A DNA stretch of 62,560 nucleotides, counting the filler, from Basidiobolus meristosporus CBS 931.73 (taxonomy: Eukaryota; Fungi; Basidiobolomycota), in NCBI GenBank assembly GCA_002104905.1. It is 4 parts of 4 records of this genome, joined end to end, with 100 filler letters (N's around TTAATTAATTAA, not from the genome) between each part and the next. Parts side by side here need not be neighbours in the genome. Positions count along the whole stretch, not along the records: positions 38,992 to 57,873 come from MCFE01001045.1; 3 more parts are not named here. One strand, 5' to 3'. Below the pieces are notes generated by a model. The model did no database searches, had not been told where the DNA came from, and saw only the letters and a program-made list of their open reading frames with translations. Position 1 is the stretch's first letter, and each line of letters starts with the position of its first letter. Of the stretch, positions 38,992-57,873 are shown one piece after another. Both the position numbers and the translations under genes were made by a program.

Positions 38992-39459
38992 TGCCGCAAA
39001 CTGTATTGACACACTGATAAACTAATAGGAGTATACTGCTCAGTATGCAATCAACCTTTCTCAATATTGGGACTTTGGTGGCAACCAGAACGCTCATCAG
39101 CTTCACGAAGAAGTGACCCACTGAATATGCAGTCAATAAGCTGGCATTTCTAGATTTGATAAATGTGTTTGGAGCAGTAAGTTAGACGAGCCCGATGAGA
39201 GATTCTCTTGCGGAGTGAAAAACAGAGCATATGCTGTTAGACGATCCAGAAGCCATTTCCGGTATTGTAAAACCAGTCTGACCATATTGAGGGAATAGCG
39301 CCGGCGCTGCTTCGCAGAATAACCTGGCTACAAAAACCGGTTTAGATTTCCGGTAGAGGGCTCCGAGAAGTACAGCACGAAGTATATAAATGTCTCTTGT
39401 GCTGGTTAGCATTCAGTAGAGGACAGCTTTGATATTTGAGAGATCACTATCAAACAATC

Positions 39460-39639
39460 ATGAAATTCGCCAGCGTACTAGCTATTCTTGCCGCTGTTTC
39501 TGCGACAATTGACTGCTACCCATTGATCCTGGAGACTAGCGATTCAGCAGTGGACAAGAGGGATATGCATGACTTTTGTGGAGGCTGGTTCTGCGGTCAT
39601 ATTAAGCGGGAAAAGTCACCGATGCCAGCAGAACCTTAA
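39460..39639 (+). CDS. Peptide precursor, lineage A (MKF..DCYP), core DMHDFCGGWFCGHI, tail EKSPMPAEP, 59 aa
   Basis: True ATG 24 nt inside the track ORF; signal, KR-core-KR; TATATAAA at 39383. Confidence 0.9.
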   Translation: MKFASVLAILAAVSATIDCYPLILETSDSAVDKRDMHDFCGGWFCGHIKREKSPMPAEP

Positions 39640-40357
39640 CTTCAACTTAAGGAATGTCAAACAGCTAATGTGCACAGACAGCACCAATGGTGATCTGATA
39701 TCCAAACCCGAACTCTGCAATTTTGTTGCTCCTGATAAACACCATGTACGATCAGCCAAGCATACCCATCCACCTTCCGCATGGCATTTTGATTTCCTGA
39801 TGACTTGTTATAAAATAAACAATTCAACTCCACATCATAAATTTCCATATTGTTATGCAAGCAGCGGAATAAAGATTACTTGATTTCGTGCCCATGCCGC
39901 TTTATTGCATGTTGTCGCAGTGCTTCAAACAATCATCTTTTCCAGCAGATTCGAACTGTACGGATATCGTCAGTCATTCTGTTATGGAGAGTGATTTTGT
40001 TGCGAACTTGATATCCACATATGGCCACCGACCTAGACTTCTAATATTCCCAAGAGTACTTCCCTCAGTCCGAAATTCTGATGTCTGTGCTACCAACAGT
40101 TCTGGGATTCAGAATATGAAATGATGACAACTCACATCCTCGCTGTCATACACGAAGCAATTTCGGGATATCACTCCGCACCTCACTTCTCATCCGGTGT
40201 TTTTGTGTAAACAACAATTCTGGGAACCATCACTCAAGGGTTCCAAGAAGCCAGATTTAATGTACATAAATAGCCTCATCAACGGCACTGCGGTTCCTCA
40301 AGCTGTAGCCTTTAGCTGGATATCAATTCCAACATCAATAGAAACCCGACAGTGATA

Positions 40358-40525
40358 ATGAGACTCGTTTCTGTGCTTGCTGTTTACATTGCTGCAACAA
40401 TGACAGCGAATGGCTACCCCGTAAATCATGTGACTGATGATGTTGCCATGGAGAAGCGAGATCTGCATGAATTTTGTGGAGGTTGGTTCTGTGGACATGT
40501 GAAACGGGATGATGACCTCGGGTAA
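40358..40525 (+). CDS. Peptide precursor, lineage B (MRL..NGYP), core DLHEFCGGWFCGHV, tail DDDLG, 55 aa; not in ORF track
   Basis: Hand translation MRLVSVLAVYIAATMTANGYPVNHVTDDVAMEKRDLHEFCGGWFCGHVKRDDDLG*. Confidence 0.9.
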   Translation: MRLVSVLAVYIAATMTANGYPVNHVTDDVAMEKRDLHEFCGGWFCGHVKRDDDLG

Positions 40526-41109
40526 AATGCAGACAAAATCTCGGTCTTGCATATGCCCAATATCTAAAGTGATCAGACCGCGCCTATGGTTACAATCTCA
40601 AGACCCAGAACTCGAAGGAAATCTACCGCCGGAATACACCAATTTTGCAGTATTTTATAATCACCATGGCCGATTAGCTAAACGTATCCTCCCACCTCCG
40701 CATGCAGTTTTATTTGGTGACGAGCTCCTATAAATAAAAAATACAACTCCATAATTCACTATCCGTATTGCTTTAACCTTTAGCAAAGCAACTACTCATA
40801 CTCCAGCTCGTCGCATTTTCACCAAGTTTGCTTGACCCAAAGATGGTAAAGATCCTCCCTACAGGATTTGGACTATACAAATATCATCAGTCATTCCATA
40901 TCCGATATTACTTCTGTTGTGGGGATCCTGTTTACTAACACTCTAATATTCCCAAGAGTGCTTCCCTTGCTTATGAAATACTGAGGTCTGCACAGACAGA
41001 CATTCTAGGAATAAGGATGTAACATGATGATGATTCACACGGTCAATTTAGTTTCAGTATAGTATTTTTGTGCTTGATTTTCATCCAGTACATGTTGTGC
41101 AACCAAAAA

Positions 41110-41169
41110 TTCTGGGAACAAGGAATCACTACCACAGGATTCCAAGAAGCCTAAATCAGCGTACATATA
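41110..41169 (+). promoter_or_regulatory. Lineage B promoter: TTCTGGGAA, TTCCAAGAA, 13 nt, TACATATA
   Basis: 41110-41118, 41140-41148, 41162-41169; same layout upstream of most other B copies. Confidence 0.55.
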
Positions 41170-41256
41170 TAGCTTACTAATAGCGATGCCATTCCAGAGT
41201 CTACAACCTCTCTTCGAATATCATATTCTTCCCGTGCCAATTACTGAGCCAAAACC

Positions 41257-41487
41257 ATGAGACTCGTTACTATACTTACTATTTGTATTGTATCTGCAAT
41301 AACAGCTAACGGCTACCCCATGACTTCGCTGACTGATGAAGTGGCCATGGACAAGAGAGATCTGCACGACTTTTGCGGAGGTTGGTTCTGCGGTCATGTA
41401 AAGCGTGAGCGCAGCATCCTTGATAACCAGGCTACTACCACTCCTCTGGGCTCACATCAGCCCGATATCCTCACGATATCTCAATAA
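41257..41487 (+). CDS. Peptide precursor, lineage B, core DLHDFCGGWFCGHV, 76 aa
   Basis: Signal-YP-pro-KR-core-KR-tail. Confidence 0.92.
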   Translation: MRLVTILTICIVSAITANGYPMTSLTDEVAMDKRDLHDFCGGWFCGHVKRERSILDNQATTTPLGSHQPDILTISQ

Positions 41488-41784
41488 GAGATCACTAAGA
41501 CAATATGACAATTCTACCGAATACTTCCCTGCCTGTTCTTCACGCCCATTTGATTTTGAATCCGTATTTGGGCAAGATCCACCACCAATGTGATTACATA
41601 ATACCCTTAGAGTCCCCAATTTTGTATACATCTTGTAATCAATAAATGGCGCGTTGGTGCACAACTACATTCTCCTTTGATGATTGCCGCAAACTGTATT
41701 GACACACTGATAAACTAATAAGAGTATACTGCTCAGTATGCAATCAACCTTTCTCAATATTGGGACTTTAGTGGCAACCAGGAC

Positions 41785-41893
41785 AGGTTGGTTCTGCGGT
41801 CATGTAAAGCGTGAGCGCAGCATCCTTGATAGCCAGGCTACTACCACTCCTCTGGGCTCACATCAGCCCGATATCCTCACGATATCTCAATAA
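41785..41893 (+). pseudogene. 5'-truncated lineage B copy (GWFCGHVKRERSILDSQ...); may be an assembly join
   Basis: Spacer ...gcaaccaggaca jumps directly into mid-core ggttggttctgc. Confidence 0.6.
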
Positions 41894-42558
41894 GAGACCA
41901 CTAAGACAATATGACACTTCTACCGAATACTTCCCTGCCTGTTCTTCACGCCCATTTGATTTTGAATCCCTATTTGGGCGAGATCTACCACCCATGTGAT
42001 TACATAATACCTTTTGAATCCCCAATTTTGTATGCGTCTCGTAATCAATAAATGGCGCGTTGGTGCACAACTACATTCTCCGTTGATGATTGCCACAAGT
42101 TGTAACGGCATAATGATAGCTTAATAAGAGTATACTGTTCAGCGTGCAATGAACCTTTCTCAATATTGGGACTTTAGTGGCAACCAGGACATTCATCAGC
42201 TTCACGAAGAAGTGACCCATTGAATATGCAGTCAATAAGCTGGCATTTCTAGATTTGATAAATGTGTTTGGAGCAGGAAGTTAGATGAGCCGATGAGAGA
42301 TTCTCTTGCGGAGTGGAAAACAGAGCTTATGCTGTTCGACGATCCAGAAGCCATTTCCGGTATTGTAAAACCAGTCTGACCATATAGAGGGGATAGCGTC
42401 GGCGCTGCTTCCTAGAATAACCTGGCTACAAGAACCGGTTTAGATTTCCGGTAGAGGGCTCCGAGAAGTACAGCACGAAGTATATAAATGTCTCTTGCGC
42501 TGGTTAGCATTCAGTAGAGGGCAGCTTTGATATCTTGAGATATTTCTACAGAACAATC

Positions 42559-42768
42559 ATGAAATTCGCCAGCGTACTTGTAATTCTTGCCGCTGCTTCA
42601 GCAACAATTGACTGCTACCCATTGATCCTGGAGACTAGCGATTCAGCAATGGACAAGAGAGATCTGCATGACTTCTGTGGAGGCTGGTTCTGTGGTCATG
42701 TCAAGCGGGAGGAAGTTCTGGAGACAAGTGAAGTCGAAATACCCACCTCACCTATGCCAAATCTCTAA
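42559..42768 (+). CDS. Peptide precursor, lineage A, core DLHDFCGGWFCGHV, 69 aa
   Basis: ATG 42559; core at 42661-42702. Confidence 0.92.
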   Translation: MKFASVLVILAAASATIDCYPLILETSDSAMDKRDLHDFCGGWFCGHVKREEVLETSEVEIPTSPMPNL

Positions 42769-43168
42769 TGTGCACGGGCAGTATTAATAATGATACGATA
42801 TTTCAACCCGAACTCACCAATTTTGTTGCTTCTGATAAACACTATGAATGATAAGCTAAGCGTAGCTTTCCATCCCCCGCATGGAATTTTGATTTTCTGA
42901 TGGCTTTCTATGAAATAAACAATATAATCCCACGTTCCCAAGTTTCATATTGCTATTCAACCAGCAGAGTAAAGACCGCTCATATGTAATCCTATGCAAT
43001 TTAGTTTCATGTTGACGAGGTGTCGCTAGTGAAGCTCCAACCAATCAGAATTGAACTCAAAGTATATCTTCCTGATATGAATAGTAATTTTGCTGTGAAC
43101 TTGATATCGACATATGGTCACCGACCAAGATTCCAAATATTCCCAAGAGTACTTCCCTCACTTGTGAA

Positions 43169-43225
43169 GCTACCAACCCTCCTCTGAGCTCACATCAGCC
43201 CGACACCCCCACAATAGCTCAACAA
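43169..43225 (+). pseudogene. Tail-only relic of a lineage B gene
   Basis: gctaccaaccctcctctgagctcacatcagcccgac... matches the B-gene 3' end; TAA changed to CAA; promoter, signal and core missing. Confidence 0.75.
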
Positions 43226-43744
43226 GGTACCACTAAGTCAGGGTTTCAACGCTGCCAAGTACGCCCCCGTCCATTCTTCACGACCATTTGATTTTGAATC
43301 CGTAATTTGGGCGAGATCCACCACCAATGTGATTACATAATAACCTTTGAATCCCCAATTTTGTATGTGTCTCGTAATCAATAAATGGCGCGTTGGTGCA
43401 CAACTACATTCTCCATTGATGATTGCCACAAGTTGTAACGGCATACTGATAGCTTAATAAGAGCATACTGTTCAGCATGCAATCAATCTTTCTCAATATT
43501 GGGACTTTAGTGGCAACCAGGACATTCATCAGCTTCACGAAGAAGTGACCCACTGAATATGCAGTCAATAAGCTGGCATTTCTAGATTTGATAAATGTGT
43601 TTGGAGCAGTAAGTTAGATGAGCCCGATGAGAGATTCTCATGCGGAGTGGAAAACAGAGCATATATGCTGTTCGACGATCGAGAAGCCATTTCCGGTATT
43701 GTAAAACCAGTCTGACCATATTGAGGGAATAGTGTCAGCGCTGC

Positions 43745-43823
43745 TTCCTAGAATAACCTGGCTACAAAACCGGTTTGGATTTCCGGTAGAGGATTCCGAG
43801 AAGTACAGCACGAAGTATATAAA
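43745..43823 (+). promoter_or_regulatory. Lineage A promoter: TTCCTAGAA, TTCCGAGAA, 13 nt, TATATAAA
   Basis: 43745-43753, 43794-43802, 43816-43823. Confidence 0.55.
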
Positions 43824-43892
43824 TGTCCCTTGCGCTGATCAGCATTCAGTAGAGGACAGCTTTGATATTTGAGAGATTACTACCAAACAATC

Positions 43893-44102
43893 ATGAAATT
43901 CGCCAGCGTACTTGCTATTCTTGCCGCTGTTTCAGTGACAATTGACTGCTACCCATTGATCCTGGAGACTAGCGATTCAGCAGTGGACAAGAGAGATCTG
44001 CATGACTTCTGCGGAGGCTGGTTCTGTGGTCATGTTAAACGGGAGGAAGCTCTCGAAGCCAATGGAGCCATAACTTCAGCCTCAGGAATGCCAAATGCCT
44101 GA
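43893..44102 (+). CDS. Peptide precursor, lineage A, core DLHDFCGGWFCGHV, 69 aa
   Basis: Signal-YP-pro-KR-core-KR-tail. Confidence 0.92.
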   Translation: MKFASVLAILAAVSVTIDCYPLILETSDSAVDKRDLHDFCGGWFCGHVKREEALEANGAITSASGMPNA

Positions 44103-44790
44103 TTAGCATAGACTACACTAATGACGAGCTGATATCCAAGCCCAAATTCAGGTTCAAGTAATCCTACCACCCAAACTCGCCAATTTTGTTGCTACTGATG
44201 CACGATCAGCTAAGCGTAACCATTCAGCCTCTGCATGGATTTTTGATTTCCTGATAATATACTACAAAATAAACAATATATCCCCACATTCCAAATATCC
44301 GTTTTGTTGCTTAACCAGTAGGGTAAAAACCCCTCGTTTGCGAGTCCTTGCCATTTTGTTCCATTCCGACATGATGTCCTAAATGAACATCTATTCGGGC
44401 ATGTTCAAACTCCACCAACATCCTCCTGTAAATTCTGTTGCAAGCTTGATATCTACATATCGGCACTGATCAAGGCCTCCAATATCCACAGGAGTTCTCC
44501 GCTCACTTGGCAAATTCTGAGGTCTGTGCTGCCGAGAATTTCAGGAATCGGAATATGATGTGAAGATAATTCACAATCTCAATCCAATAAACAAGACTGT
44601 TTCAGGACATCATTTCAGTTTACTTTCCATCCGTTGTATCTTGTGCGACCAACAATTCTGGGAATCAGTAATTGCCACTCTGGGATTCCTAGAACTCCCA
44701 AGAAATGTACATAAATCGCTCCCCAACGAACCATCATTTCTCAGGCTACAGCCTTGCTATCGAATACCAAACTCTTCCCCAACCGGAATA

Positions 44791-45021
44791 ATGAGACTCC
44801 TTTCTGTACTCGCTGTTTGCATCATTTCTGCAATGACAGCTAACGGCTATCCTGTGGGTCAGCTAGCCAATGATGTAACCAAGGAGAAGAGAGATCTGCA
44901 TGACTTTTGTGGAGGTTGGTTCTGTGGCCATGTGAAGCGTGATCTCTCTGTCCATGACAGCCAGACTACTACATCTTCTCTGAGCTCACAGCAGCCTAAA
45001 ACCTTCATGACCGCTCTATAA
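44791..45021 (+). CDS. Peptide precursor, lineage B, core DLHDFCGGWFCGHV, 76 aa
   Basis: ATG 44791 (MRLLSVLAVC); the longer track ORF is upstream read-through from a non-ATG start. Confidence 0.9.
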   Translation: MRLLSVLAVCIISAMTANGYPVGQLANDVTKEKRDLHDFCGGWFCGHVKRDLSVHDSQTTTSSLSSQQPKTFMTAL

Positions 45022-45687
45022 GGTACCACCAAGTCAAGATGTTAATTGTCCCGAATTCGTCTCCGCCCGTTCTTCAAGCCCATTTGATTTTGAATCCGTA
45101 ATTTGGGCAAGATCTACCACTAATGTGATTACATAATACCCTTTGAATCCCCAATTTTGTACGCGTCTCGTAATCAATAAATGGCGCGTTGGTGCACAAC
45201 TGCATTCTCCATTGATGATTGCCACAAGTTGTAATGGCATACTGATAGCTTAATTAGAGCATACTTCTCAGCATGTAATAAACCTTTCTCATTATTATGA
45301 TATTAGTGGTAACCAGATCATTCATTAGCCTCATGTAGAAGTGACCCATTGAATATGCAGTTAATAAGCTGGCATATCTAGATTTGATAAATGTGTTTGG
45401 AGCAGGAAATTAGATGAGCCCGATGAGAGGTTCTAATGCGGAGTGAAAAATAGAGCATATGCTGTTCAACGATCCAGAAGCCAATTCCGGTTTTCTAAAA
45501 CCAGTCTGACCATATTGAGGGGATAGTGTCAGCGTTGCTTCCTAGAATAACCTGGCTACAAAAACCGGTTTGGATTTCCAGTAGTGGGTTCCGAGAAGTG
45601 CAGCACGGAGAATATAAATGTCCCTTGCGCTGATCAGCATTCAGTAGAGGACAGCTTTGATATTTGAGAGATCACTACCAAACAATC

Positions 45688-45897
45688 ATGAAATTCGCCA
45701 GCGTACTTGCTATTCTTGCCGCTGTTTCAGTGACAATTGACTGCTACCCATTGATCCTGGACACTAGCAATTCAGCAGTGGACAAGAGAGATCTGCATGA
45801 CTTCTGCGGAGGCTGGTTCTGTGGTCATGTCAAGCGAGAGCAAGTTCTGGAGACAAGTGAAGCCAATATCTCCGCTCCATCGATGTTAGTTGCCTGA
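45688..45897 (+). CDS. Peptide precursor, lineage A, core DLHDFCGGWFCGHV, 69 aa
   Basis: Signal-YP-pro-KR-core-KR-tail. Confidence 0.92.
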   Translation: MKFASVLAILAAVSVTIDCYPLILDTSNSAVDKRDLHDFCGGWFCGHVKREQVLETSEANISAPSMLVA

Positions 45898-46597
45898 TGT
45901 GCACAGGCAGCACTGATGACAAGCCGATATCCAAATCCGAACTATCCAATTTTGTTGCTCCTGATAAATACCACACACGACAAATTAAGCGTATCCATCC
46001 AACATCCTCCACATGGATTTTTGATTATCTGATAATTTCTCAAGAAATAAACATTGTCACCCTGCATTTCATATTTTCTCACGGCTACTAGACTAGCAGA
46101 GTGGAGGCCACTTGTATTCAGACCCATTCCCATATATTCCATATTGGAATGAGCTGATTTCAACTCTACGAGGCACCTTTATTCCGCAATACAATGGCAA
46201 TTTCGCGGTGAAAAGAATATTCACATATGGTCGCCGTCCAAGATCCGTTCAATGCACACCTCACAAAACCTCTTCAAAGTTACAGGTATGTCATAGGTAC
46301 CATCATTGAATATTATGCATATGTCTGGGGTATTAAGCCGAATGAACTCTTGAGAAGCCAATATACGAAAAATAATAAATATATCATACGACGATCAAGA
46401 ATTCATTTCCAGTTTCCAAAATCAATCTAACCTTAATGGGGGATTGGTGGCCGCTTTGCTTCCTAGAATATCCCCGCTACAACAACTGGTATGAGTTTCA
46501 GGAGTGAAATGGATGGGAAGTATAAGAGGAACTCGTGCCGATTTGAGCTTAGTAGAAGACAGCCTTTGATATCTTGGTAGTTCATTAAAAAAGAATC

Positions 46598-46798
46598 ATG
46601 AAATCCACCAACACACTTATTGTTATTGTCGCAGCTTCAGTAGCCATTGACTGCTACCCATCGATTGTGAAGACTATCAACTCAACTTTGAACAAGAGAG
46701 ATCTACATGACCTCTATGACCATGTCAAGCGGGAGAGACTTCTGGAGACAAGTGAAGAAATTACATCCACCTCACAAGGCTATATTTTGTACTATTAG
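46598..46798 (+). CDS. Diverged lineage A precursor with Cys-free 9-aa core DLHDLYDHV, 66 aa
   Basis: Open frame, 19+15 aa leader geometry and both KR sites kept; core shortened by 15 nt. Confidence 0.75.
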   Translation: MKSTNTLIVIVAASVAIDCYPSIVKTINSTLNKRDLHDLYDHVKRERLLETSEEITSTSQGYILYY

Positions 46799-47513
46799 CC
46801 TACTCGACTGTCGCACTAACACATTACTGACTACCCTCATGCCTGCTTTCAACTGTTGAATTAACATATTCTTGACCGCTCGTCACGCCTGATTAATTTT
46901 TGAATCCGCAATTTCAGCGAGAATATCACCAATATTTGAATATTCAATTTTGTTGACATATTGTAGTCAATAAACAGGGTACTAGGGCGTAGTGATACCC
47001 TCTGTTGATGGAACAACTTGTTAGTATGTGTGCATGGTTGAATGTCAGCATTTGATTCAGTATGCCACAAATCCTTACATAAATTGCTTTGTCTCCAACA
47101 TGTCCAATGCGCATGAATCATACCAGGGGCCATACCATAGTGCGCACGTTTCACCAGCGTATATAACTCTTCAGATTTACTATTATATAGTATATATCAT
47201 TACTGAAGTTAATAAATATGTTTGGAGCAATTAACTATGGGAAATCTCTGAGGTTATTTTGCCCACTGGATCATAATGAGTATGCTGTTTGCCGATCAGG
47301 AAGCTATTTCCGGTTTTTCGATACCGGTGTGACTATACCGAGTGCTTGGCGTCCGCTTTGTTTCCTAGAATATCGCTGCTGCAATAACTAGTTTAGATAT
47401 CCCCTGGGAAAGTACCAATATGTGTTGTAAGAAGAGTATAAATAGAACTCTTGCGGATCCATATTCAGTAGTACACGGCGTTTGATATCTTGAGAGATCA
47501 TTATACTCTACCA

Positions 47514-47681
47514 ATGAAGTTCACCAGCATGCTTGTCGCGATTTCTGCCTCTTCAGTAGCTGTTGACTGCTACCCATTGACCCTGGAGACTAGCGAGTCC
47601 ACAGTGAACAAGAGAGATCTGCATGACTTTTGTGGAGGCTGATTCTGTGGACATGTTAAACGGGATGATGACCTCAGGTAA
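47514..47681 (+). pseudogene. Chimeric copy (A-type leader, DDDL-type tail) with Trp codon changed to TGA
   Basis: MKFTSMLVAISASSVAVDCYPLTLETSESTVNKRDLHDFCGG*FCGHVKRDDDLR*; TGA at 47640-47642. Confidence 0.85.
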
Positions 47682-48413
47682 AATGCAGACAAAATCTCGG
47701 TCTTGCATATGCCCAATATCTAAAGTGATCAGACCGCGCCTATGAGTACAATCTCAAGACCCAGAACTCGAAGGAAATCTACCGCCGGAATACACCAATT
47801 TTACTGTATTTTATAATCACCATGGCCGATTAGCTAAACGTATCCTCCCACCTCCGCATGCAGTTTTATTTGGTGACGAGCTCCTATAAAATAAACAATA
47901 CAACTCCATAATCCACTATCCGTATTGCTTTAACCTTTAGCAAAGCAACTACTCATACTCAAGCTCGTCGCATTTTCACCAAGTTTGCTTGACCCAAAGA
48001 TGGTAAAGATCCTCCCTACAGGATTTGGACTATACAAATATCATCAGTCATTCCATATCCGATATTACTTCTGTTGTGGAGATCCTGTTTACTAACACTC
48101 TGATATTCCCAAGAGTGCTTCCCTTGCTTATGAAATACTGAGGTCTGCACAGACAGACATTCTAGGAATAAGGATGTAACATGATGATGATTCACACGGT
48201 CAATTTAGTTTCAGTATAGTATTTTTGTGCTTGATTTTCATCCAGTACATGTTGTGCAACCAAAAATTCTGGGAACAAGGAATCACTACCACAGGATTCC
48301 AAGAAGCCTAAATCAGCGTACATATATAGCTTACTAATAGCGATGCCATTCCACAGTCTACAACCTCTCTTCGAATATCATATTCTTCCCCTGCCAATTA
48401 TTGAGCCAAAACC

Positions 48414-48644
48414 ATGAGACTCGTTACTATACTTACTATTTGTATTGTATCTGCAATAACAGCTAACGGCTACCCCATGACTTCGCTGACTGATGAAGTG
48501 GCCATCGACAAGAGAGATCTGCACGACTTTTGCGGAGGTTGGTTCTGCGGTCATGTAAAGCGTGAGCGCAGCATCCTTGATAGCCAGGCTACTACCACTC
48601 CTCTGGGCTTACATCAGCCCGATATCCTCACGATAGCTCAATAA
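48414..48644 (+). CDS. Peptide precursor, lineage B, core DLHDFCGGWFCGHV, 76 aa
   Basis: Signal-YP-pro-KR-core-KR-tail. Confidence 0.92.
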   Translation: MRLVTILTICIVSAITANGYPMTSLTDEVAIDKRDLHDFCGGWFCGHVKRERSILDSQATTTPLGLHQPDILTIAQ

Positions 48645-49310
48645 GAGGCCACTAAGACAATATGACACTTCTACCGAATACTTCCCTGCCTGTTCTTCAC
48701 GCCCATTTGATTTTGAATCCCTATTTGGGCAAAATCTACCACCCACGTGATTACATAATACCCTTAGAGTCCCCAATTTTGTATACATCTTGTAATCAAT
48801 AAATGGCGCGTTGGTGCACAACTACATTCTCCTTTGATGATTGCCACAAGTTGTAACGGCATACTGATAGCTTAATAAGAGTATACTGTTCAGCATGCAA
48901 TCAATCTTTCTCAATATTGGGACTTTAGTGGCAACCAGGACATTCATCAGCTTCACGAAGAATTGACCCATTGAATATGCAGTCAATAAGCTGGCATATC
49001 TAGATTTGATAAATGTGTTTGGAGCAGGAAGTTAGACGAGCCCGATGAGAGATTCTCTTGCGGAGTGGAAAACAGAGCTTATGCTGTTCGACGATCCAGA
49101 AGCCATTTCCGGTATTGTAAAACCAGTCTGACCATATAGAGGGGATAGCGTCGGCGCTGCTTCCTAGAATAACCTGGCTACAAGAACCGGCTTAGATTTC
49201 CGGTAGAGGGCTCCGAGAAGTACAGCACGAAGTATATAAATGTCTCTTGCGCTGGTTAGCATTCAGTAGAGGGCAGCTTTGATATCTTGAGATATTTCTA
49301 CAGAACAATC

Positions 49311-49520
49311 ATGAAATTCGCCAGCGTACTTGTAATTCTTGCCGCTGCTTCAGCAACAATTGACTGCTACCCATTGATCCTGGAGACTAGCGATTCAGCA
49401 ATGGACAAGAGAGATCTGCATGACTTCTGTGGAGGCTGGTTCTGTGGTCATGTCAAGCGGGAGGAAGTTCTGGAGACAAGTGAAGTCGAAATACCCACCT
49501 CACCTATGCCAAATCTCTAA
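49311..49520 (+). CDS. Peptide precursor, lineage A, core DLHDFCGGWFCGHV, 69 aa
   Basis: Same protein as 42559 and 56908. Confidence 0.92.
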   Translation: MKFASVLVILAAASATIDCYPLILETSDSAMDKRDLHDFCGGWFCGHVKREEVLETSEVEIPTSPMPNL

Positions 49521-49920
49521 TGTGCACGGGCAGTATTAATAATGATACGATATTTCAACCCGAACTCACCAATTTTGTTGCTTCTGATAAACACTATGAA
49601 TGATAAGCTAAGCGTAGCTTTCCATCCCCCGCATGGAATTTTGATTTTCTGATGGCTTTCTATGATATAAACAATATAATCCCACGTTCTAAATATTCAT
49701 ATTGCTATTCAACCAGCAGAGTAAAGACCGCTCATATGTAATCCTATGCAATTTAGTTTCATGTTGACGAGGTGTCGCTAGTGAAGCTCCAACCAATCAG
49801 AATTGAACTCAAAGTATATCTTCCTGATATGAATAGTAATTTTGCTGTGAACTTGATATCGACATATGGTCACCGACCAAGATTCCAAATATTCCCAAGA
49901 GTACTTCCCTCACTTGTGAA

Positions 49921-49977
49921 GCTACCAACCCTCCTCTGAGCTCACATCAGCCCGACACCCCCACAATAGCTCAACAA
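49921..49977 (+). pseudogene. Tail-only relic of a lineage B gene
   Basis: Matches 43169-43225. Confidence 0.75.
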
Positions 49978-50644
49978 GGTACCACTAAGTCAGGGTTTCA
50001 ACGCTGCCAAGTACGCCCCCGTCCATTCTTCACGACCATTTGATTTTGAATCCGTAATTTGGGCGAGATCCACCACCAATGTGATTACATAATACCCTTT
50101 GAATCCCCAATTTTGTATGTGTCTCGTAATCAATAAATGGCGCGTTGGTGCACAACTACATTCTCCTTTGATGATTGCCACAAGTTGTAACGGCATACTG
50201 ATAGCTTAATAAGAGTATACTGTTCAGCATGCAATCAATCTTTCTCAATATTGGGACTTTAGTGGCAACCAGGACATTCATCAGCTTCACGAAGAAGTGA
50301 CCCACTGAATATGCAGTCAATAAGCTGGCATTTCTAGATTTGATAAATGTGTTTGGAGCAGTAAGTTAGATGAGCCCGATGAGAGATTCTCATGCGGAGT
50401 GGAAAACAGAGCATATATGCTGTTCGACGATCGAGAAGCCATTTCCGGTATTGTAAAACCAGTCTGACCATATTGAGGGAATAGTGTCAGCGCTGCTTCC
50501 TAGAATAACCTGGCTACAAAACCGGTTTGGATTTCCGGTAGAGGATTCCGAGAAGTGCGGCACGAAGTATATAAATGTCCCTTGCGCTGATCAGCATTCA
50601 GTAGAGGAAAGCTTTGATATTTGCGAGATCACTATCAAACAATC

Positions 50645-50854
50645 ATGAAATTCGCCAGCGTACTTGCTATTCTTGCCGCTGTTTCTGCGACAGTTGATTG
50701 CTACCCATTGATCCTGGAGACTAGCGATTCAGCAATGGACAAGAGAGATCTGCATGACTTCTGCGGAGGCTGGTTCTGTGGTCATGTCAAGCGTGAGGAA
50801 GCTCCGGAGACAACTGAAGCCAATATCTCCACCCCATCGATGTTAGTTGCCTGA
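50645..50854 (+). CDS. Peptide precursor, lineage A, core DLHDFCGGWFCGHV, 69 aa
   Basis: Signal-YP-pro-KR-core-KR-tail. Confidence 0.92.
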   Translation: MKFASVLAILAAVSATVDCYPLILETSDSAMDKRDLHDFCGGWFCGHVKREEAPETTEANISTPSMLVA

Positions 50855-51534
50855 TGAGAACAGGCAGCACTGATGACAAGCCGACATCCATATCCGAACT
50901 ATCCAATTTTGTTGCTCCTGATAAATACCACACACGACAAACTAAGCGTATCCATCCATCCATCCTCCACATGCGTTTTTGATAATCTGACAATTTCCAG
51001 AGAAATAAACATTGCTACCCTGCATTTCATATTTTCTCACGGCTATTAAACTAGCGGAGTGGAAGTCACTTGTATTCGGACCCATTCCCGTATATTCCAT
51101 GCTGAGATGAGCTGATTTCAACTCTACCAGGCACCTTTATTCCGTAATACAATGGCAATTTCGCGGTGAAAGGAATATTCACATATGGTTGCCGACCCAG
51201 CTTTCCTCTATTCCCCAGAAGACTTCCCCTACTCTTGAAAGGCTGACATCTGCGCAGTCAAACATTCTAGGAATCAGAACATGACTTGAGGATGATGACC
51301 ACCTTTGATGTAACACGCAATGTGATTTTAGTATATCACCATCCCATAGCTTTTCAACGATCAGTTGCATCTTGTGGCACCAATAGTTCTGAGAATCGGA
51401 AATCACCAGCCTGGGATTCCAAGAAGCCAGAATCAATGCACATAAATAGCTCACTAACGACACTGCCATTCATCAGCCTGCAACCTTTCTGTTGAGTATC
51501 AGATTCTACTTCAGCCAGCAATCGAACCTAAACC

Positions 51535-51765
51535 ATGAGACTCTTTGCTGTACTCACTACTTGTATCGTTGCCACAATGACAGCTAATGGCTACCCCGTA
51601 AATCAGGTGACTGATGGAGTAGCCATGGAAAAGAGAGATCTGCACGACTTTTGTGGAGGCTGGTTCTGCGGCCATGTGAAGCGTGATCACACAGTCCATG
51701 ACAGTCAGACTACTACATCTTCTCTGAGCTCACATCAGCCTAACACCTTCATGACAGCTCAATAA
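51535..51765 (+). CDS. Peptide precursor, lineage B, core DLHDFCGGWFCGHV, 76 aa
   Basis: Signal-YP-pro-KR-core-KR-tail. Confidence 0.92.
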   Translation: MRLFAVLTTCIVATMTANGYPVNQVTDGVAMEKRDLHDFCGGWFCGHVKRDHTVHDSQTTTSSLSSHQPNTFMTAQ

Positions 51766-52431
51766 GGTACCACCTAGTCAAGATGTTAATTCTCCCAAAT
51801 GTGTTTCTGCCCGTTCTTCAAGCCCATTTGATTTTGAATCCGTAATTTGGGCAAGATCCACCACCAATGTGATTACATAATACCCTTTGAATCCCCAATT
51901 TTGTATGCGTCTCGTAATCAATAAATGGCGCATTGGTGCACAACTACATTCTCCTTTGATGATTGCCGCAAACTGTATTGACACACTGATAAACTAATAG
52001 GAGTATACTGCTCAGTATGCAATCAACCTTTCTCAATATTGGGACTTTGGTGGCAACCAGAACGCTCATCAGCTTCACGAAGAAGTGACCCACTGAATAT
52101 GCAGTCAATAAGCTGGCATTTCTAGATTTGATAAATGTGTTTGGAGCAGTAAGTTAGACGAGCCCGATGAGAGATTCTCTTGCGGAGTGAAAAACAGAGC
52201 ATATGCTGTTAGACGATCCAGAAGCCATTTCCGGTATTGTAAAACCAGTCTGACCATATTGAGGGAATAGCGCCGGCGCTGCTTCGCAGAATAACCTGGC
52301 TACAAAAACCGGTTTAGATTTCCGGTAGAGGGCTCCGAGAAGTACAGCACGAAGTATATAAATGTCTCTTGTGCTGGTTAGCATTCAGTAGAGGACAGCT
52401 TTGATATTTGAGAGATCACTATCAAACAATC

Positions 52432-52611
52432 ATGAAATTCGCCAGCGTACTTGTAATTCTTGCCGCTGTTTCTGCGACAATTGACTGCTACCCATTGATC
52501 CTGGAGACTAGCGATTCAGCAGTGGACAAGAGGGATATGCATGACTTTTGTGGAGGCTGGTTCTGCGGTCATATTAAGCGGGAAAAGTCACCGATGCCAG
52601 CAGAACCTTAA
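52432..52611 (+). CDS. Peptide precursor, lineage A, core DMHDFCGGWFCGHI, 59 aa
   Basis: Paralog of 39460, offset 12972. Confidence 0.9.
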   Translation: MKFASVLVILAAVSATIDCYPLILETSDSAVDKRDMHDFCGGWFCGHIKREKSPMPAEP

Positions 52612-53329
52612 CTTCAACTTAAGGAATGTCAAACAGCTAATGTGCACAGACAGCACCAATGGTGATCTGATATCCAAACCTGAACTCTGCAATTTTGTTG
52701 CTCCTGATAAACACCATGTACGATCAGCCAAGCATACCCATCCACCTTCCGCATGGCATTTTGATTTCCTGATGACTTGTTATAAAATAAACAATTCAAC
52801 TCCACATCATAAATTTCCATATTGTTATGCAAGCAGCGGAATGAAGATTACTTGATTTCGTGCCCATACCGCTTTATTGCATGTTGTCGCAGTGCTTCAA
52901 ACAATCATCTTTTCCAGCAGATTCGAACTGTACGGATATCGTCAGTCATTCTGTTATGGAGAGTGATTTTGTTGCGAACTTGATATCCACATATGGCCAC
53001 CGACCTAGACTTCTAATATTCCCAAGAGTACTTCCCTCAGTCCGAAATTCTGATGTCTGTGCTACCAACAGTTCTGGGATTCAGAATATGAAATGATGAC
53101 AACTCACACCCTCGCTGTCATACACGAAGCAATTTCGGGATATCACTCCGCACCTCACTTCTCATCCGGTGTTTTTGTGTAAACAACAATTCTGGGAACC
53201 ATCACTCAAGGGTTCCAAGAAGCCAGATTTAATGTACATAAATAGCCTCATCAACGGCACTGCGGTTCCTCAAGCTGTAGCCTTTAGCTGGATAACAATT
53301 CCAACATCAATAGAAACCCGACAGTGATA

Positions 53330-53497
53330 ATGAGACTCGTTTCTGTGCTTGCTGTTTACATTGCTGCCACAATGACAGCGAATGGCTACCCCGTAAGTCT
53401 TGTGACTGATGGAGTAACGATGGAAAAGAGAGATCTGCATGACTTTTGTGGAGGTTGGTTCTGTGGACATGTGAAACGGGATGATGACCTCGGGTAA
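53330..53497 (+). CDS. Peptide precursor, lineage B, core DLHDFCGGWFCGHV, tail DDDLG, 55 aa; not in ORF track
   Basis: Hand translation MRLVSVLAVYIAATMTANGYPVSLVTDGVTMEKRDLHDFCGGWFCGHVKRDDDLG*. Confidence 0.9.
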   Translation: MRLVSVLAVYIAATMTANGYPVSLVTDGVTMEKRDLHDFCGGWFCGHVKRDDDLG

Positions 53498-54229
53498 AAT
53501 GCAGACAAAATCTCGGTCTTGCATATGCCCAATATCTAAAGTGATCAGACCGCGCCTATGAGTACAATCTCAAGACCCAGAACTCGAAGGAAATCTACCG
53601 CCGGAATACACCAATTTTGCAGTATTTTATAATCACCATGGCCGATTAGCTAAACGTATCCTCCCACCTCTGCATGCAGTTTTATTTGGTGACGAGCTCC
53701 TATAAAATAAACAATACAACTCCATAATCCACTATCCGTATTGCTTTAACCTTTAGCAAAGCAACTACTCATACTCAAGCTCGTCGCATTTTCACCAAGT
53801 TTGCTTGACCCAAAGATGGTAAAGATCCTCCCTACAGGATTTGGACTATACAAATATCATCAATCATTCCATATCCGATATAACTTCTGTTGTGGGGATC
53901 CTGTTTACTAACACTCTAATATTCCCAAGAGTGCTTCCCTTGCTTATGAAATACTGAGGTCTGCCCAGACAGACATTCTAGGAATAAGGATGTAACATGA
54001 TGATGATTCACACGGTCAATTTAGTTTCAGTATAGTATTTTTGTGCTTGATTTTCATCCAGTACATGTTGTGCAACCAAAAATTCTGGGAACAAGGAATC
54101 ACTACCACAGGATTCCAAGAAGCCTAAATCAGCGTACATATATAGCTTACTAATAGCGATGCCATTCCACAGTCTACAACCTCTCTTCGAATATCATATT
54201 CTTCCCCTGCCAATTATTGAGCCAAAACC

Positions 54230-54460
54230 ATGAGACTCGTTACTATACTTACTATTTGTATTGTATCTGCAATAACAGCTAACGGCTACCCCATGACTTC
54301 GCTGACTGATGAAGTGGCCATCGACAAGAGAGATCTGCACGACTTTTGCGGAGGTTGGTTCTGCGGTCATGTAAAGCGTGAGCGCAGCATCCTTGATAGC
54401 CAGGCTACTACCACTCCTCTGGGCTTATATCAGCCCGATATCCTCACGATAGCTCAATAA
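54230..54460 (+). CDS. Peptide precursor, lineage B, core DLHDFCGGWFCGHV, 76 aa
   Basis: Signal-YP-pro-KR-core-KR-tail. Confidence 0.92.
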   Translation: MRLVTILTICIVSAITANGYPMTSLTDEVAIDKRDLHDFCGGWFCGHVKRERSILDSQATTTPLGLYQPDILTIAQ

Positions 54461-55124
54461 GAGGCCACTAAGACAATACGACACTTCTACCGAATACTTC
54501 CCTGCCTGTTCTTCACGTCCATTTGATTTTGAATCCGTATTTGGGCAAGATCCACCACCCATGTGATTACATAATACCCTTTGAATCCCCAATTTTGTAT
54601 ACATCTTGTAATCAATAAATGGCGCGTTGGTGCACAACTACATTCTCCATTGATGATTGCCGCAAACTGTATTGACACACTGATAAACTAATAGGAGTAT
54701 ACTGCTCAGTATGCAATCAACCTTTCTCAATATTGGGACTTTAGTGGCAACCAGGACATTCATCAGCTTCACGAAGAAGTGACCCACTGAATATGCAGTC
54801 AATAAGCTGGCATTTCTAGATTTGATAAATGTGTTTGGAGCAGGAAGTTAGATGAGCCGATGAGAGATTCTCATGCGGAGTGGAAAACAGAGCTTATGAT
54901 GTTCGACGATCCAGAAGCCATTTCCGGTATTGTAAAACCAGTCTGACCATATTGAGGGGATAGCGTCGGCGCTGCTTCGCAGAATAACCTGGCTACAAAA
55001 ACCGGTTTAGATTTCCGGTAGAGGATTCTGAGAAGTGCGGCACGAAGTATATCAATGTCTCTTGCGCTGATTAGCATTCAGTAAAATACAGCTTTGATAT
55101 TTGAGAGATCACTACCAAACAATC

Positions 55125-55334
55125 ATGAAATTCGCCAGCGTACTTGCTATTCTTGCCGCTGTTTCTGCGAGAGTTGATTGCTACCCATTGATACTGGAGA
55201 CTAGCGATTCAGCAATGGACAAGAGAGATCTGCATGACTTCTGCGGAGGCTGGTTCTGTGGTCATGTCAAGCGTGAGGAAGCTCTGGAGACAAGTGAAGC
55301 CAATATCTCCACTCCATTGATGTTAGTTGCCTGA
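55125..55334 (+). CDS. Peptide precursor, lineage A, core DLHDFCGGWFCGHV, 69 aa
   Basis: Signal-YP-pro-KR-core-KR-tail. Confidence 0.92.
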   Translation: MKFASVLAILAAVSARVDCYPLILETSDSAMDKRDLHDFCGGWFCGHVKREEALETSEANISTPLMLVA

Positions 55335-56010
55335 TGAGAACAGGCAGCACTGATGACAAGCCGACATCCATATCCGAACTATCCAATTTTGTTGCTCCTG
55401 ATAAATACCACACACGACAAACTAAGCGTATCCATCCATCCATCCTCCACATGCGTTTTTGATAATCTGACAATTTCCAGAGAAATAAACATTGCTACCC
55501 TGCATTTCATATTTTCTCACGGCTATTAAACTAGCGGAGTGGAAGTCACTGGTATTCGGACCCATTCCCATATATTCCATATTGGAATGAGCTGATTTCA
55601 ACTCTACCAGGCACCTTTATTCAGTAATACAATGGCAATTTCGCGCTGAAAGGAATATTCACATATGGTTGCCGACCCAGCTTTTCTCCATTCCCCAGAA
55701 GGCTTCCCCTACTCATGAAAGGCTGCCATCTGCGCAGCCAAACATTCTAGGAATCAGGACATGACTTGAGGATGATGACCATCTTTGATGTAACACGCAA
55801 GGTAATTTTAGTATATCATCATCCTATAGCTTTTCAACGATCAGTTGCATTTTGTGGCACCAATAGTTCTGAGAATCGGAAATCGCCAGCCTGAGATTCC
55901 AAGAAGCCAGAATCAATGCACATAAATAGCTCACTAACGACACTGCCATTCATCAGCCTGCAGCCTTTCTGTTAAGTAACAAATTCTACTTGAGCATTTG
56001 AACCTAAGCC

Positions 56011-56241
56011 ATGAGACTCATTGCTGTACTCACTACTTGTATCGTTGCCACAATGACAGCTAATGGCTACCCCGTAATTCAGGTGACTGATGGAGTAGTC
56101 ATGGAAAAGAGAGATCTGCACGACTTTTGTGGAGGCTGGTTCTGTGGCCATGTGAAGCGTGATCACACAGTCCATGACAGTCAGACTACTACATCTTCTC
56201 TGAGCTCACAGCAGCCTAAAACCTTCATGACCGCTCTATAA
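56011..56241 (+). CDS. Peptide precursor, lineage B, core DLHDFCGGWFCGHV, 76 aa
   Basis: Signal-YP-pro-KR-core-KR-tail. Confidence 0.92.
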   Translation: MRLIAVLTTCIVATMTANGYPVIQVTDGVVMEKRDLHDFCGGWFCGHVKRDHTVHDSQTTTSSLSSQQPKTFMTAL

Positions 56242-56907
56242 GGTACCACCAAGTCAAGATATTAATTCTCCCAAATGTGTCTCCGCCCGTTCTTCAAGCC
56301 CATTTGATTTTGAATCCGTAATTTGGGCAAGATCCACCACCAATGTGATTACATAATACCCTTTGAATCCCCAATTTTGTATGCGTCTCGTAATCAATAA
56401 ATGGCGCATTGGTGCACAACTACATTTTCCTTTGATGATTGCCGCAAACTGTATTGACACACTGATAAACTAATAAGAGCATACTGTTTAGTATGCAATC
56501 AACCTTTCTCAATATTGGGACTTTAGTGGCAACCAGGACATTCATCAGCTTCACGAAGAAGTGGCCCATTGAATATGCAGTCAATAAGCTGGCATTTCTA
56601 GATTTGATAAATGTGTTTGGAGCAGGAAGTTAGATGAGCCGATGAGAGATTCTCATGCGGAGTGGAAAACAGAGCTTATGCTGTTCGACGATCCAGAAGC
56701 CAATTCCGGTATTGTAAAACCAGTCTGACCATATAGAGGGGATAGCGTCGGCGCTGCTTCCTAGAATAACCTGGCTACAAGAACCGGCTTAGATTTCCGG
56801 TAGAGGGCTCCGAGAAGTACAGCACGAAGTATATAAATGTCTCTTGCGCTGGTTAGCATTCAGTAGAGGGCAGCTTTGATATCTTGAGATATTTCTACAG
56901 AACAATC

Positions 56908-57117
56908 ATGAAATTCGCCAGCGTACTTGTAATTCTTGCCGCTGCTTCAGCAACAATTGACTGCTACCCATTGATCCTGGAGACTAGCGATTCAGCAATG
57001 GACAAGAGAGATCTGCATGACTTCTGTGGAGGCTGGTTCTGTGGTCATGTCAAGCGGGAGGAAGTTCTGGAGACAAGTGAAGTCGAAATACCCACCTCAC
57101 CTATGCCAAATCTCTAA
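56908..57117 (+). CDS. Peptide precursor, lineage A, core DLHDFCGGWFCGHV, 69 aa
   Basis: Same protein as 42559 and 49311. Confidence 0.92.
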   Translation: MKFASVLVILAAASATIDCYPLILETSDSAMDKRDLHDFCGGWFCGHVKREEVLETSEVEIPTSPMPNL

Positions 57118-57517
57118 TGTGCACGGGCAGTATTAATAATGATACGATATTTCAACCCGAACTCACCAATTTTGTTGCTTCTGATAAACACTATGCATGA
57201 TAAGCTAAGCGTAGCTTTCCATCCCCCGCATGGAATTTTGATTTTCTGATGGCTTTCTATGAAATAAACAATATAATCCCACGTTCCCAAGTTTCATATT
57301 GCTATTCAACCAGCAGAGTAAAGACCGCTCATATGTAATCCTATGCAATTTAGTTTCATGTTGACGAGGTGTCGCTAGTGAAGCTCCAACCAATCAGAAT
57401 TGAACTCAAAGTATATCTTCCTGATATGAATAGTAATTTTGCTGTGAACTTGATATCGACATATGGTCACCGACCAAGATTCCAAATATTCCCAAGAGTA
57501 CTTCCCTCACTTGTGAA

Positions 57518-57574
57518 GCTACCAACCCTCCTCTGAGCTCACATCAGCCCGACACCCCCGCAATAGCTCAACAA
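57518..57574 (+). pseudogene. Tail-only relic of a lineage B gene
   Basis: Matches 43169-43225. Confidence 0.75.
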
Positions 57575-57873
57575 GGTACCACTAAGTCAGGGTTTCAACG
57601 CTGCCAAGTACGCCCCCGTCCATTCTTCACGACCATTTGATTTTGAATCCGTAATTTGAGCGAGATCCACCACCAATGTGATTACATAATACCCTTTGAA
57701 TCCCCAATTTTGTATGCGTCTCGTAATCAATAAATGGCGCATTGGTGCACAACTACATTCTCCATTGATGATTGCCACAAGTTGTAACGGCATACTGGTA
57801 GCTTAATAAGAGTATACTGTTCAGTATGCAATCAATCTTTCTCAATATTGGGACTTTAGTGGCAACCAGGACA

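Follow-up and report, generated by a model that had tools for sequence, protein, structure and literature searches.

A tandem array of probable secreted-peptide mini-genes in Basidiobolus meristosporus whose predicted 14-residue product begins with Asp-Leu-His

The window analysed here, a stretch of 62,560 nucleotides made of four joined parts of the genome of Basidiobolus meristosporus CBS 931.73 (GenBank assembly GCA_002104905.1), contains at positions 38992-57873 an entire scaffold of 18,882 bp (MCFE01001045.1; 42.8% G+C), which is occupied by a head-to-tail array of small genes, each coding for a predicted secreted peptide. The array lies on the + strand and comprises 19 units with a Lys-Arg (KR)-core junction plus one 5'-truncated fragment, and the units follow one another at intervals of about 0.9 kb, except for four intervals of about 1.3 kb. 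Two mostly alternating subfamilies were distinguished by their precursors, MKFASVL…IDCYPLILETSDSAxDKR (MKF) and MRLxxVL…TANGYPVxxVTDxVAMEKR (MRL), both with exactly 32 residues before KR. The features of the gene under study, a member of the MKF subfamily, are the following, with positions counted along the window.

42481-42488, + strand: TATA-type box TATATAAA, about 78 nt 5' of the ATG.
42559-42768, + strand: focal gene, an intronless open reading frame (ORF) of 69 codons; proteins identical to its product are encoded at 49311-49520 and 56908-57117.
42559-42615, + strand: predicted signal peptide, residues 1-19, with n-region MK, hydrophobic core FASVLVILAAA and a small residue at -1.
42616-42654, + strand: propeptide YPLILETSDSAMD, fast-evolving, with a ratio of nonsynonymous to synonymous rates (dN/dS) of 0.5-1.25.
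42655-42660, + strand: upstream dibasic K-R, codons AAG AGA, in the context M-D-K-R; KR is found at 61 of 61 cores and is kept through synonymous changes.
42661-42702, + strand: core DLHDFCGGWFCGHV, the predicted mature 14-mer, with an Asp-Leu-His start, a C-X4-C ring of Cys6 and Cys11 around GGWF, and His13.
42703-42708, + strand: downstream dibasic K-R, codons AAG CGG, a putative site of Kex2-type cutting followed by Kex1-type trimming.

The focal ORF is laid out as signal MKFASVLVILAAASATIDC, propeptide, KR, core, KR and tail EEVLETSEVEIPTSPMPNL, the tail after the second KR being acidic and rich in Ser, Thr and Pro. Signal-peptide features and the predicted cleavage point, between residues 15 and 19, were read from the sequence by eye. 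The core codons on the + strand, GAT CTG CAT GAC TTC TGT GGA GGC TGG TTC TGT GGT CAT GTC, translate as D-L-H-D-F-C-G-G-W-F-C-G-H-V, in which the two Cys have the C-X4-C spacing around GGWF that had been claimed in an earlier reading of this DNA without database searches (hereafter, the sequence-only reading). The computed monoisotopic mass of DLHDFCGGWFCGHV is 1589.618 Da in the oxidised and 1591.634 Da in the reduced form, and that of a variant core peptide, DMHDFCGGWFCGHI, is 1621.590 Da; the 14-mer is anionic, with a net charge of -2 at pH 7. The TATATAAA box is kept across the MKF units, except for TATATCAA at unit 55125 and TATAAG at a Cys-free unit described below, and the MRL units carry a ACATAAATAG or ACATATATAG box at a comparable upstream position. 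An AlphaFold2 model of the precursor, based on a 17-sequence alignment, had a mean predicted local distance difference test score of 56, with a helix at residues 3-18 only and otherwise disorder, and is uninformative for the core.

Substitution rates were compared between the segments of the precursor. Over the 18 codons of KR-core-KR, dN/dS was 0.029 within MKF (synonymous rate, dS, 0.32), 0.018 within MRL (dS 0.45) and 0.008 between the subfamilies, where dS, at about 1.2, is saturated. The signal peptide plus propeptide gave values of 0.28-1.25 within subfamilies and 0.80 between them. Counted as minimum substitution events, KR-core-KR had accumulated 20 synonymous and 5 nonsynonymous changes and the signal plus propeptide 26 and 45, respectively (Fisher p = 3.5e-4), and in both subfamilies, MRL more clearly than MKF, conservation along the unit peaked at the core. 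Silent codon variation was found in the core (CAT/CAC, TTT/TTC, TGT/TGC, GGA/GGT/GGC, GTA/GTC/GTG/GTT) and at both K-R pairs (AAG/AAA; AGA/AGG/CGA; CGG/CGT/CGA). As this silent variation is abundant, the identity of the peptide cannot be put down to recent duplication or gene conversion. The locus is a tandem array of independently promoted mini-genes under purifying selection focused on KR-core-KR. Judged by this substitution pattern, the predicted mature peptide and both cleavage sites are the target of selection, which is the classic signature of a bioactive peptide released by a convertase.

According to the sequence of the precursor, the prepropeptide would enter the endoplasmic reticulum by means of a signal peptide some 19 residues long, removed near residue 19, after which a Kex2-type convertase would cut behind (M/V/I)-(D/E)-K-R and behind the downstream K-R, and a Kex1-type carboxypeptidase would trim the C-terminal K-R. 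Both M-D-K-R and the wider (M/V/I)-(D/E)-K-R consensus at positions P4-P1 resemble the canonical L-D-K-R Kex2 site of yeast alpha-factor, and Kex2-type cleavage after KR is supported by the fact that selection keeps both dibasic sites. The product would be one invariant 14-mer, DLHDFCGGWFCGHV, in which a Cys6-Cys11 disulfide would close a six-residue ring showing Gly-Gly-Trp-Phe. Since selection retains dozens of intact copies for the same peptide, bulk production can be argued, and the cell would then secrete in bulk an anionic 14-mer of 1589.6 Da whose freed Asp-Leu-His end may be able to bind Cu(II) and Ni(II). A secreted peptide released by a convertase, with the biogenesis described here, is very probable.

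Relatives of the precursor were detected only in Basidiobolus in a profile search of 1.84 billion representative proteins. In Basidiobolus ranarum (GCA_040143965.1) the genes encode two-core precursors and are clustered on both strands, with seven precursor genes on one 7.7-kb contig. The core in this species is DLHDLCG[G/R]WFCGHT, followed by KR, KKR, RKR or RR, and the distance from Met to KR is 32 residues, as in B. meristosporus. Between the two species the pro-regions share only about 35-43% identity, and the signal features kept in both are a basic n-region, a hydrophobic core of 11-13 residues and small residues at -1 and -3. When the 61 cores of both species were pooled, D1, H3, G12 and H13 were invariant; residues 2 (L/M), 4 (D/E/A), 5 (F/L), 8 (G/R) and 14 (V/I/T) were variable; and C6, G7, W9, F10 and C11 were each altered in a single copy, two of these singleton copies bearing further ring damage (a second core change or Cys loss) and looking dead. 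Identical cores accounted for 32 of 39, and the fixed core differences between the species were F5L, G8R and V14T.

Residue Pro21 (alignment column 21; window 42619-42621) is also invariant, with Tyr or Leu before it in all precursors of the two species, so that after removal of the signal the propeptide would begin with X-Pro, an N-terminus of the dipeptidyl-aminopeptidase type.

No match to known families was obtained by other searches. A Pfam scan of three precursors gave nothing above threshold, MF_alpha and MF_alpha_N included, and its matches to zf-RING_13 (E 0.04) and DUF7586 (E 0.23) were discarded as chance, the former mirroring the Cys/His pattern only. The best score in the ESM Atlas search was 0.82, below the useful range, the PDB profile search returned only a zinc finger at E 0.23, and 'CGGWFC' was without match in the literature searched. 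Two metagenome loci with the pattern [FL]CG[GR]WFCG were rejected as chance matches (no KR, no signal peptide, different GC content). Of the hits of the profile search, P0008 was rejected as a repetitive ORF of 603 aa that matched solely through 'SCGHVKR'. The metagenomic Kex2-processed repeat proteins (KEPs) P0010 and P0012, with GGRLGFCGPPGAPCGKV repeats, were also rejected, as they have a C-X6-C ring and no Trp/Phe (E 1e-4); their similarity is probably convergent and KEP-like.

The remaining features of the array are the following.

39460-39639, + strand: MKF copy with variant core DMHDFCGGWFCGHI and a short tail.
40358-40525, + strand: MRL copy with core DLHEFCGGWFCGHV.
41257-41487, + strand: MRL copy, standard core.
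41379-42191, + strand: tandem duplication of 406 bp, 2.0 copies, 92% matches, which gave the 5'-truncated fragment …GWFCGHVKRERSILD… at about 41785-41893.
43893-44102, + strand: MKF copy, standard core.
44791-45021, + strand: MRL copy, standard core.
45688-45897, + strand: MKF copy, standard core.
46598-46798, + strand: Cys-free derivative MKS…KR-DLHDLYDHV-KR… with 15 nt deleted from the ring, probably decaying.
47514-47642, + strand: pseudogene, core Trp codon TGG changed to TGA.
48414-48644, + strand: MRL copy, standard core.
49311-49520, + strand: MKF copy, protein the same as the focal one.
50645-50854, + strand: MKF copy, standard core.
51535-51765, + strand: MRL copy, standard core.
52432-52611, + strand: MKF copy with variant core DMHDFCGGWFCGHI, segmental duplicate of 39460.
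53330-53497, + strand: MRL copy, standard core, short tail.
54230-54460, + strand: MRL copy, standard core.
55125-55334, + strand: MKF copy, standard core.
56011-56241, + strand: MRL copy, standard core.
56908-57117, + strand: MKF copy, protein the same as the focal one.

No other credible gene was found in this 18.9-kb piece, in which no ORF of at least 100 codons had a family match. A second array was found on scaffold MCFE01000116.1 (164 kb), with at least 22 further units within the 20 kb covered and continuing past both ends, so that the total of more than 40 genes in B. meristosporus is a lower bound; as the whole of the first scaffold is array, the assembly probably under-counts the copies. 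Both arrays are mosaics of segmental duplications with 82-98% identity. The duplicated blocks 38992-41785 versus 51964-54758 and 41785-44138 versus 48536-50890 are 97-98% identical and lie over older unit repeats of 82-94%. The 406-bp duplication copied the 3' half of an MRL gene together with downstream DNA, which explains one of the four 1.3-kb spacings.

Dead copies, with TGG to TGA at the core Trp (47514-47642), TGT to TGA at a core Cys (L001 4205-4339) or a lost start codon (L001 1537), are scattered, which argues that the array turns over by birth and death and is not homogenised. The Cys-free copies at window 46598 and L001 605 have five differences, all nonsynonymous; the identity of their coding sequences is 97.5% and that of the flanks 98.4% and 96.3%, and, of the adjoining units, that of the window is a pseudogene and that of the second array is without its start codon. 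An antisense ORF of 63-68 codons (MPLQLVAIINGECSCAPTRHLLITR…) recurs on the - strand at 41920-42111, 43238-43444 and 45034-45240, about 450-650 bp upstream of MKF genes and within strongly conserved DNA, and probably represents no more than a conserved stretch of promoter or repeat.

A word-based protein search returned four matches, all from B. meristosporus CBS 931.73. The NCBI gene models P0001-P0004 (K493DRAFT_364243, 364242, 300011 and 349408; window array and L001 1-20324) are chimeras that splice neighbouring units, P0001 for example having two cores and P0002 two signal peptides.

The profile search and a follow-up word search also revealed a second family, comprising P0009 (L004 6794-7423) and P0013 in B. 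ranarum and P0014 in B. meristosporus. Its core, FWNMRYYCGGWVC[A/M]H-x after KR or RR (for instance FWNMRYYCGGWVCAHx), lies at the C-terminal end of secreted precursors with degenerate upstream repeats and is invariant between both species; the peptide form is FWNMRYYCGGWVCAHP, which is cationic (+0.8), and the genes are low-copy. Profile-profile alignment (hhalign) placed this core on KR-DLHDF-CGGWFCGHV-KR with a probability of 69% and an E value of 4e-5 over 21 columns. The FWNMRYY… family is a probable sister of the DLHD family. It keeps the CGG(W/F)-x-C-x-H ring and His, behind a seven-residue N-terminal segment, FWNMRYY, that has no His3.

Three B. ranarum precursors (L003 1116-1574 on the - strand, P0006 and P0011) end in …VNHPGLDRFC[G/E]GWFC followed by a stop. 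This third, ring-only unit comes after a monobasic Arg and is without DLHD and GHT.

As the ring is shared by the sister family and the ring-only units, it looks like an older shared recognition element, with DLHD as a family-specific module. The product would accordingly be read as a two-module peptide, in which the ring and His (CGGW-x-C-x-H) would most likely serve for recognition and the N-terminal Asp-Leu/Met-His-Asp would be specific to the family.

Among known systems, the alpha-factor precursors (MFalpha1/2 of Saccharomyces cerevisiae; ppg1/ccg-4 of Pezizomycotina) are alike in signal peptide, propeptide, type of Kex2 site, short Trp-containing peptide, many identical cores and Kex1-type trimming of KR, and the Pezizomycotina peptides also have two Cys. 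They differ in that they have no sequence or Pfam similarity to the family, which is without X-Ala Ste13 spacers and has a C-X4-C ring, and in that several cores are held in one or two genes, whereas B. meristosporus has more than 40 genes with a single core each. Peptide hormones with a C-X4-C ring display aromatic residues, and oxytocin/vasopressin and urotensin II (CFWKYC) have a six-residue disulfide ring with aromatics; however, these are animal neuropeptides without homology to the family, and the likeness is one of shape only. The KEPs (Le Marquer 2019; Umemura 2020, PMC7329392) are likewise secreted precursors with KR-bounded cores. The n/h/c pattern of a signal peptide, which is required of KEPs, was recognised in the sequences of both species, and the requirement of at least two cores per protein sets the single-core B. 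meristosporus genes outside the class but admits their two-core B. ranarum orthologues. Therefore, repeat-based KEP screens would miss the B. meristosporus genes. According to Umemura 2020 (PMC7329392), B. meristosporus has the most KEPs (43) among 1461 fungi. The Basidiobolus-specific KEP type S-3 of that survey was considered as a candidate for this family and rejected on its description there, being rich in Tyr and Asp.

With regard to the N-terminus, the closest parallel is hepcidin-25, in which a convertase of the Kex2/furin family exposes an Asp-X-His motif on a small disulfide peptide (PMC9779829, PMC7232333). The parallel, drawn already in the sequence-only reading, is apt, as it is DTH that the convertase exposes there on a Cys-containing peptide, although hepcidin-25 is a vertebrate peptide of 25 residues with four disulfides, cationic and not homologous, and its hormonal function is copper-independent. 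The same H2N-Asp-X-His is found in albumin (DAHK) and histatin-5 (DSH) (PMC7701195), whose binding of Cu(II) and Ni(II) has been shown experimentally, whereas the site is predicted here from its sequence. In the dikaritins (ustiloxin, phomopsin, asperipin), a DUF3328/UstYa gene adjoins the precursor gene, which is not so in the Basidiobolus arrays. The family is thus like alpha-factor and the KEPs in biogenesis and like hepcidin in the exposure of D-x-H, yet it is a member of neither.

Residue 2 of an amino-terminal Cu(II)- and Ni(II)-binding (ATCUN) site cannot be Pro, because its amide nitrogen must deprotonate, and an X-X-His start has a chance base rate of about 2-3%, given by the frequency of His. 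The sequence-only reading had proposed that cleavage after KR exposes such a site, defined as H2N-X-X-His (PMC7701195), with His3 kept in every full-length copy. In 19 of 19 window copies, KR is indeed followed directly by D-[L/M]-H, including the units with DMHDFCGGWFCGHI (39460, 52432) and DLHEFCGGWFCGHV (40358) and the Cys-free DLHDLYDHV (46598). Both His3 and D1 are present in 61 of 61 cores and residue 2 is Leu or Met and never Pro, which agrees with the ATCUN definition at the level of sequence; homologues do not freely substitute His3 within the family in either species. The Asp-Leu start, directly preceded by KR, is also not an X-Ala/X-Pro dipeptide of the Ste13 type, as had been stated. 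Other parts of the proposal fared worse. The Cys-free copy, which had been counted in support of His3, is not an independent witness and carries no constraint, with 5 of 5 differences nonsynonymous, and killing through reactive oxygen species is the weakest part, given that the peptide is anionic (-2) and that redox cycling by Cu(II)-ATCUN complexes is poor.

The overall best explanation of the locus, which we favour with moderate confidence, is that of amplified secreted-peptide mini-genes whose product would have a freed N-terminus of ATCUN sequence, and the released peptide would probably bind Cu(II) in vitro. Several points weigh against this explanation or against a copper role within it. 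None of the approximately 41 true ORFs of 55-76 codons is annotated, and exact look-up of the 69-aa and 76-aa ORFs gave no match on record; the position of signal-peptide cleavage was placed by eye, the Cys6-Cys11 disulfide is presumed, and the homology of the sister family depends on about 21 aligned columns. X-X-His counts as a single event, since every copy goes back to the same ancestral peptide. Conservation is uniform and does not single out His3, which speaks for a peptide recognised as a whole rather than for a three-residue metal site. The sister peptide lacks an ATCUN site, and the Cys-free derivative, without sign of constraint, is probably decaying. The array has no match to the Mac1-type copper-response element (CuRE) TTTGCKCR where about two would be expected, which is a weak test in this phylum. 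A degenerate Ace1-type motif was found 33 times in the promoter scan versus 14.5, but the same positions recur in duplicated units, so that these matches are not independent.

For the function of the peptide, a pheromone-like or quorum-type signal comparable to ascomycete alpha-factor may be considered first, although the case is tentative. The Trp-Phe disulfide loop would here be the pharmacophore and the ATCUN sequence incidental or modulatory. The layout of the gene is that of alpha-factor, with a signal peptide, a propeptide, an aliphatic-acidic-K-R site, a short Trp peptide and many identical copies; ligand-receptor systems typically show what is seen here, a peptide invariant throughout within a species and a few fixed differences (F5L, G8R, V14T) from one species to the other, and the ring is common to a sister family with a different N-terminal segment. 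The alpha-pheromones of filamentous ascomycetes are also two-Cys, Trp/Gly-rich peptides. However, there is no Pfam MF_alpha match and there are no Ste13 spacer dipeptides, the more than 40 genes exceed the copy number of any known pheromone, Ste12 pheromone response elements occur in the array at chance frequency and, to our knowledge, no peptide pheromone is known in Zoopagomycota. In favour of the signalling role, yeast alpha-factor itself binds Cu(II), as stated where PMC11220758 cites Bossak 2016.

The handling of copper or nickel as the selected role is a plausible hypothesis, if still a doubtful one, which we estimate to be roughly level with the signalling role and somewhat ahead of an antimicrobial one. 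Through its ATCUN site the peptide would chelate metal stoichiometrically outside the cell, so as to scavenge it, to deprive gut or dung bacteria of it or to detoxify it, and the ring might be a handle for re-uptake. What stands of the copper interpretation made from the sequence alone is that the sequence criteria hold and that His3 is invariant, D-x-H being present in all 61 cores of two species with L/M variation at residue 2 as ATCUN allows. Asp1 matches the natural D-x-H subclass of albumin (DAH) and hepcidin (DTH) (PMC9779829). With a second His and two Asp, 6 of the 14 residues are potential ligands and the charge is -2; the retention of more than 40 intact gene copies by selection would also make sense for a stoichiometric chelator. 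Basidiobolus lives as a gut symbiont whose siderophore capacity is expanded, and this heavy investment of the genus in metal scavenging is circumstantial support (PMC7466969). On the other hand, the uniform conservation is more than a tripeptide metal site requires, the sister family has the ring and the His in the absence of His3, CuRE-like elements are missing from the array, and the literature offered no precedent for a ribosomal fungal copper-binding peptide. Binding of Cu(II) by ATCUN sites is very tight, with slow exchange, which fits sequestration better than delivery.

A more specific form of the copper hypothesis is a gene-encoded Cu/Ni metallophore, in which stoichiometric amounts of a convertase-activated ATCUN peptide would come from more than 40 tandem genes. 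The peptide would sequester or shuttle Cu(II) and Ni(II) in the animal gut or in dung and be recognised at its invariant disulfide loop by a dedicated receptor or transporter; taken as a whole, this is rather unlikely.

The third role, an antimicrobial or defence peptide directed at gut or dung competitors and possibly potentiated by copper, is also unlikely, and slightly more so. The bacteria-rich gut and dung niche of the producer would suit it (PMC7466969), ATCUN antimicrobial peptides such as hepcidin-25 and histatin-5 exist (PMC7232333, PMC7409060), tandem amplification suggests a high dose, and the loop is aromatic. Yet an anionic (-2) peptide of 14 residues is unlike typical cationic membrane-active peptides. 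Defence paralogues usually diversify, whereas most cores are identical here (32 of 39), with a dN/dS of about 0.02.

That the core is further tailored by cross-linking or modification, as in a peptide that is ribosomally synthesised and modified post-translationally (RiPP), in which case the N-terminus may not be free, has a very slim chance. Trp, Cys and His are common cross-linking residues, and many fungal Kex2-processed precursors are RiPP precursors (PMC7329392). However, the 18.9-kb array holds no ORF of at least 100 codons with a family match, the two called genes in the 20 kb of the second array are both chimeric precursor models, and the genes flanking the B. ranarum precursors are all housekeeping genes (ureidoglycolate lyase, RPS3Ae, G-beta, RNR and a desaturase). 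Neither DUF3328/UstYa nor other tailoring genes were found near the precursors, in about 39 kb of arrays and in the B. ranarum flanks, and a RiPP pathway, which an unlinked enzyme might still serve, is unlikely. Finally, a satellite-like repeat with chance ORFs in place of functional genes, which would suit the unannotated units, the scaffold made wholly of repeat and the broken copies (47514; L001 4205), is effectively refuted by the selection and pooled-core data, as the core has a dN/dS of 0.01-0.03 while dS between the subfamilies is saturated, and a second species keeps the family, with its genes arranged differently.

The finding is larger than that of the sequence-only reading: an unannotated, genus-restricted and massively amplified family of secreted peptides, plus a sister family. 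Early-diverging fungi have almost no characterised secreted peptides, and a small-gene family that is among the most amplified in a fungus of the vertebrate gut, a sister species of which causes basidiobolomycosis, is essentially missing from annotation. As a peptide of 14 residues is cheap to synthesise, the copper/nickel, signalling and antimicrobial hypotheses are directly testable. If the ATCUN site is functional, the hepcidin principle of metal binding activated by a convertase would extend to fungi and provide a ribosomal route to metallophores; a metallophore, if true, would be the first fungal ribosomal peptide of this kind and an example outside animals of metal binding switched on by proteolysis. 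Were the peptide a signal, Zoopagomycota would have its first candidate for a peptide pheromone or quorum signal. Either way, peptide families with one core in each of many genes go unnoticed by gene callers as well as by KEP screens based on repeats.

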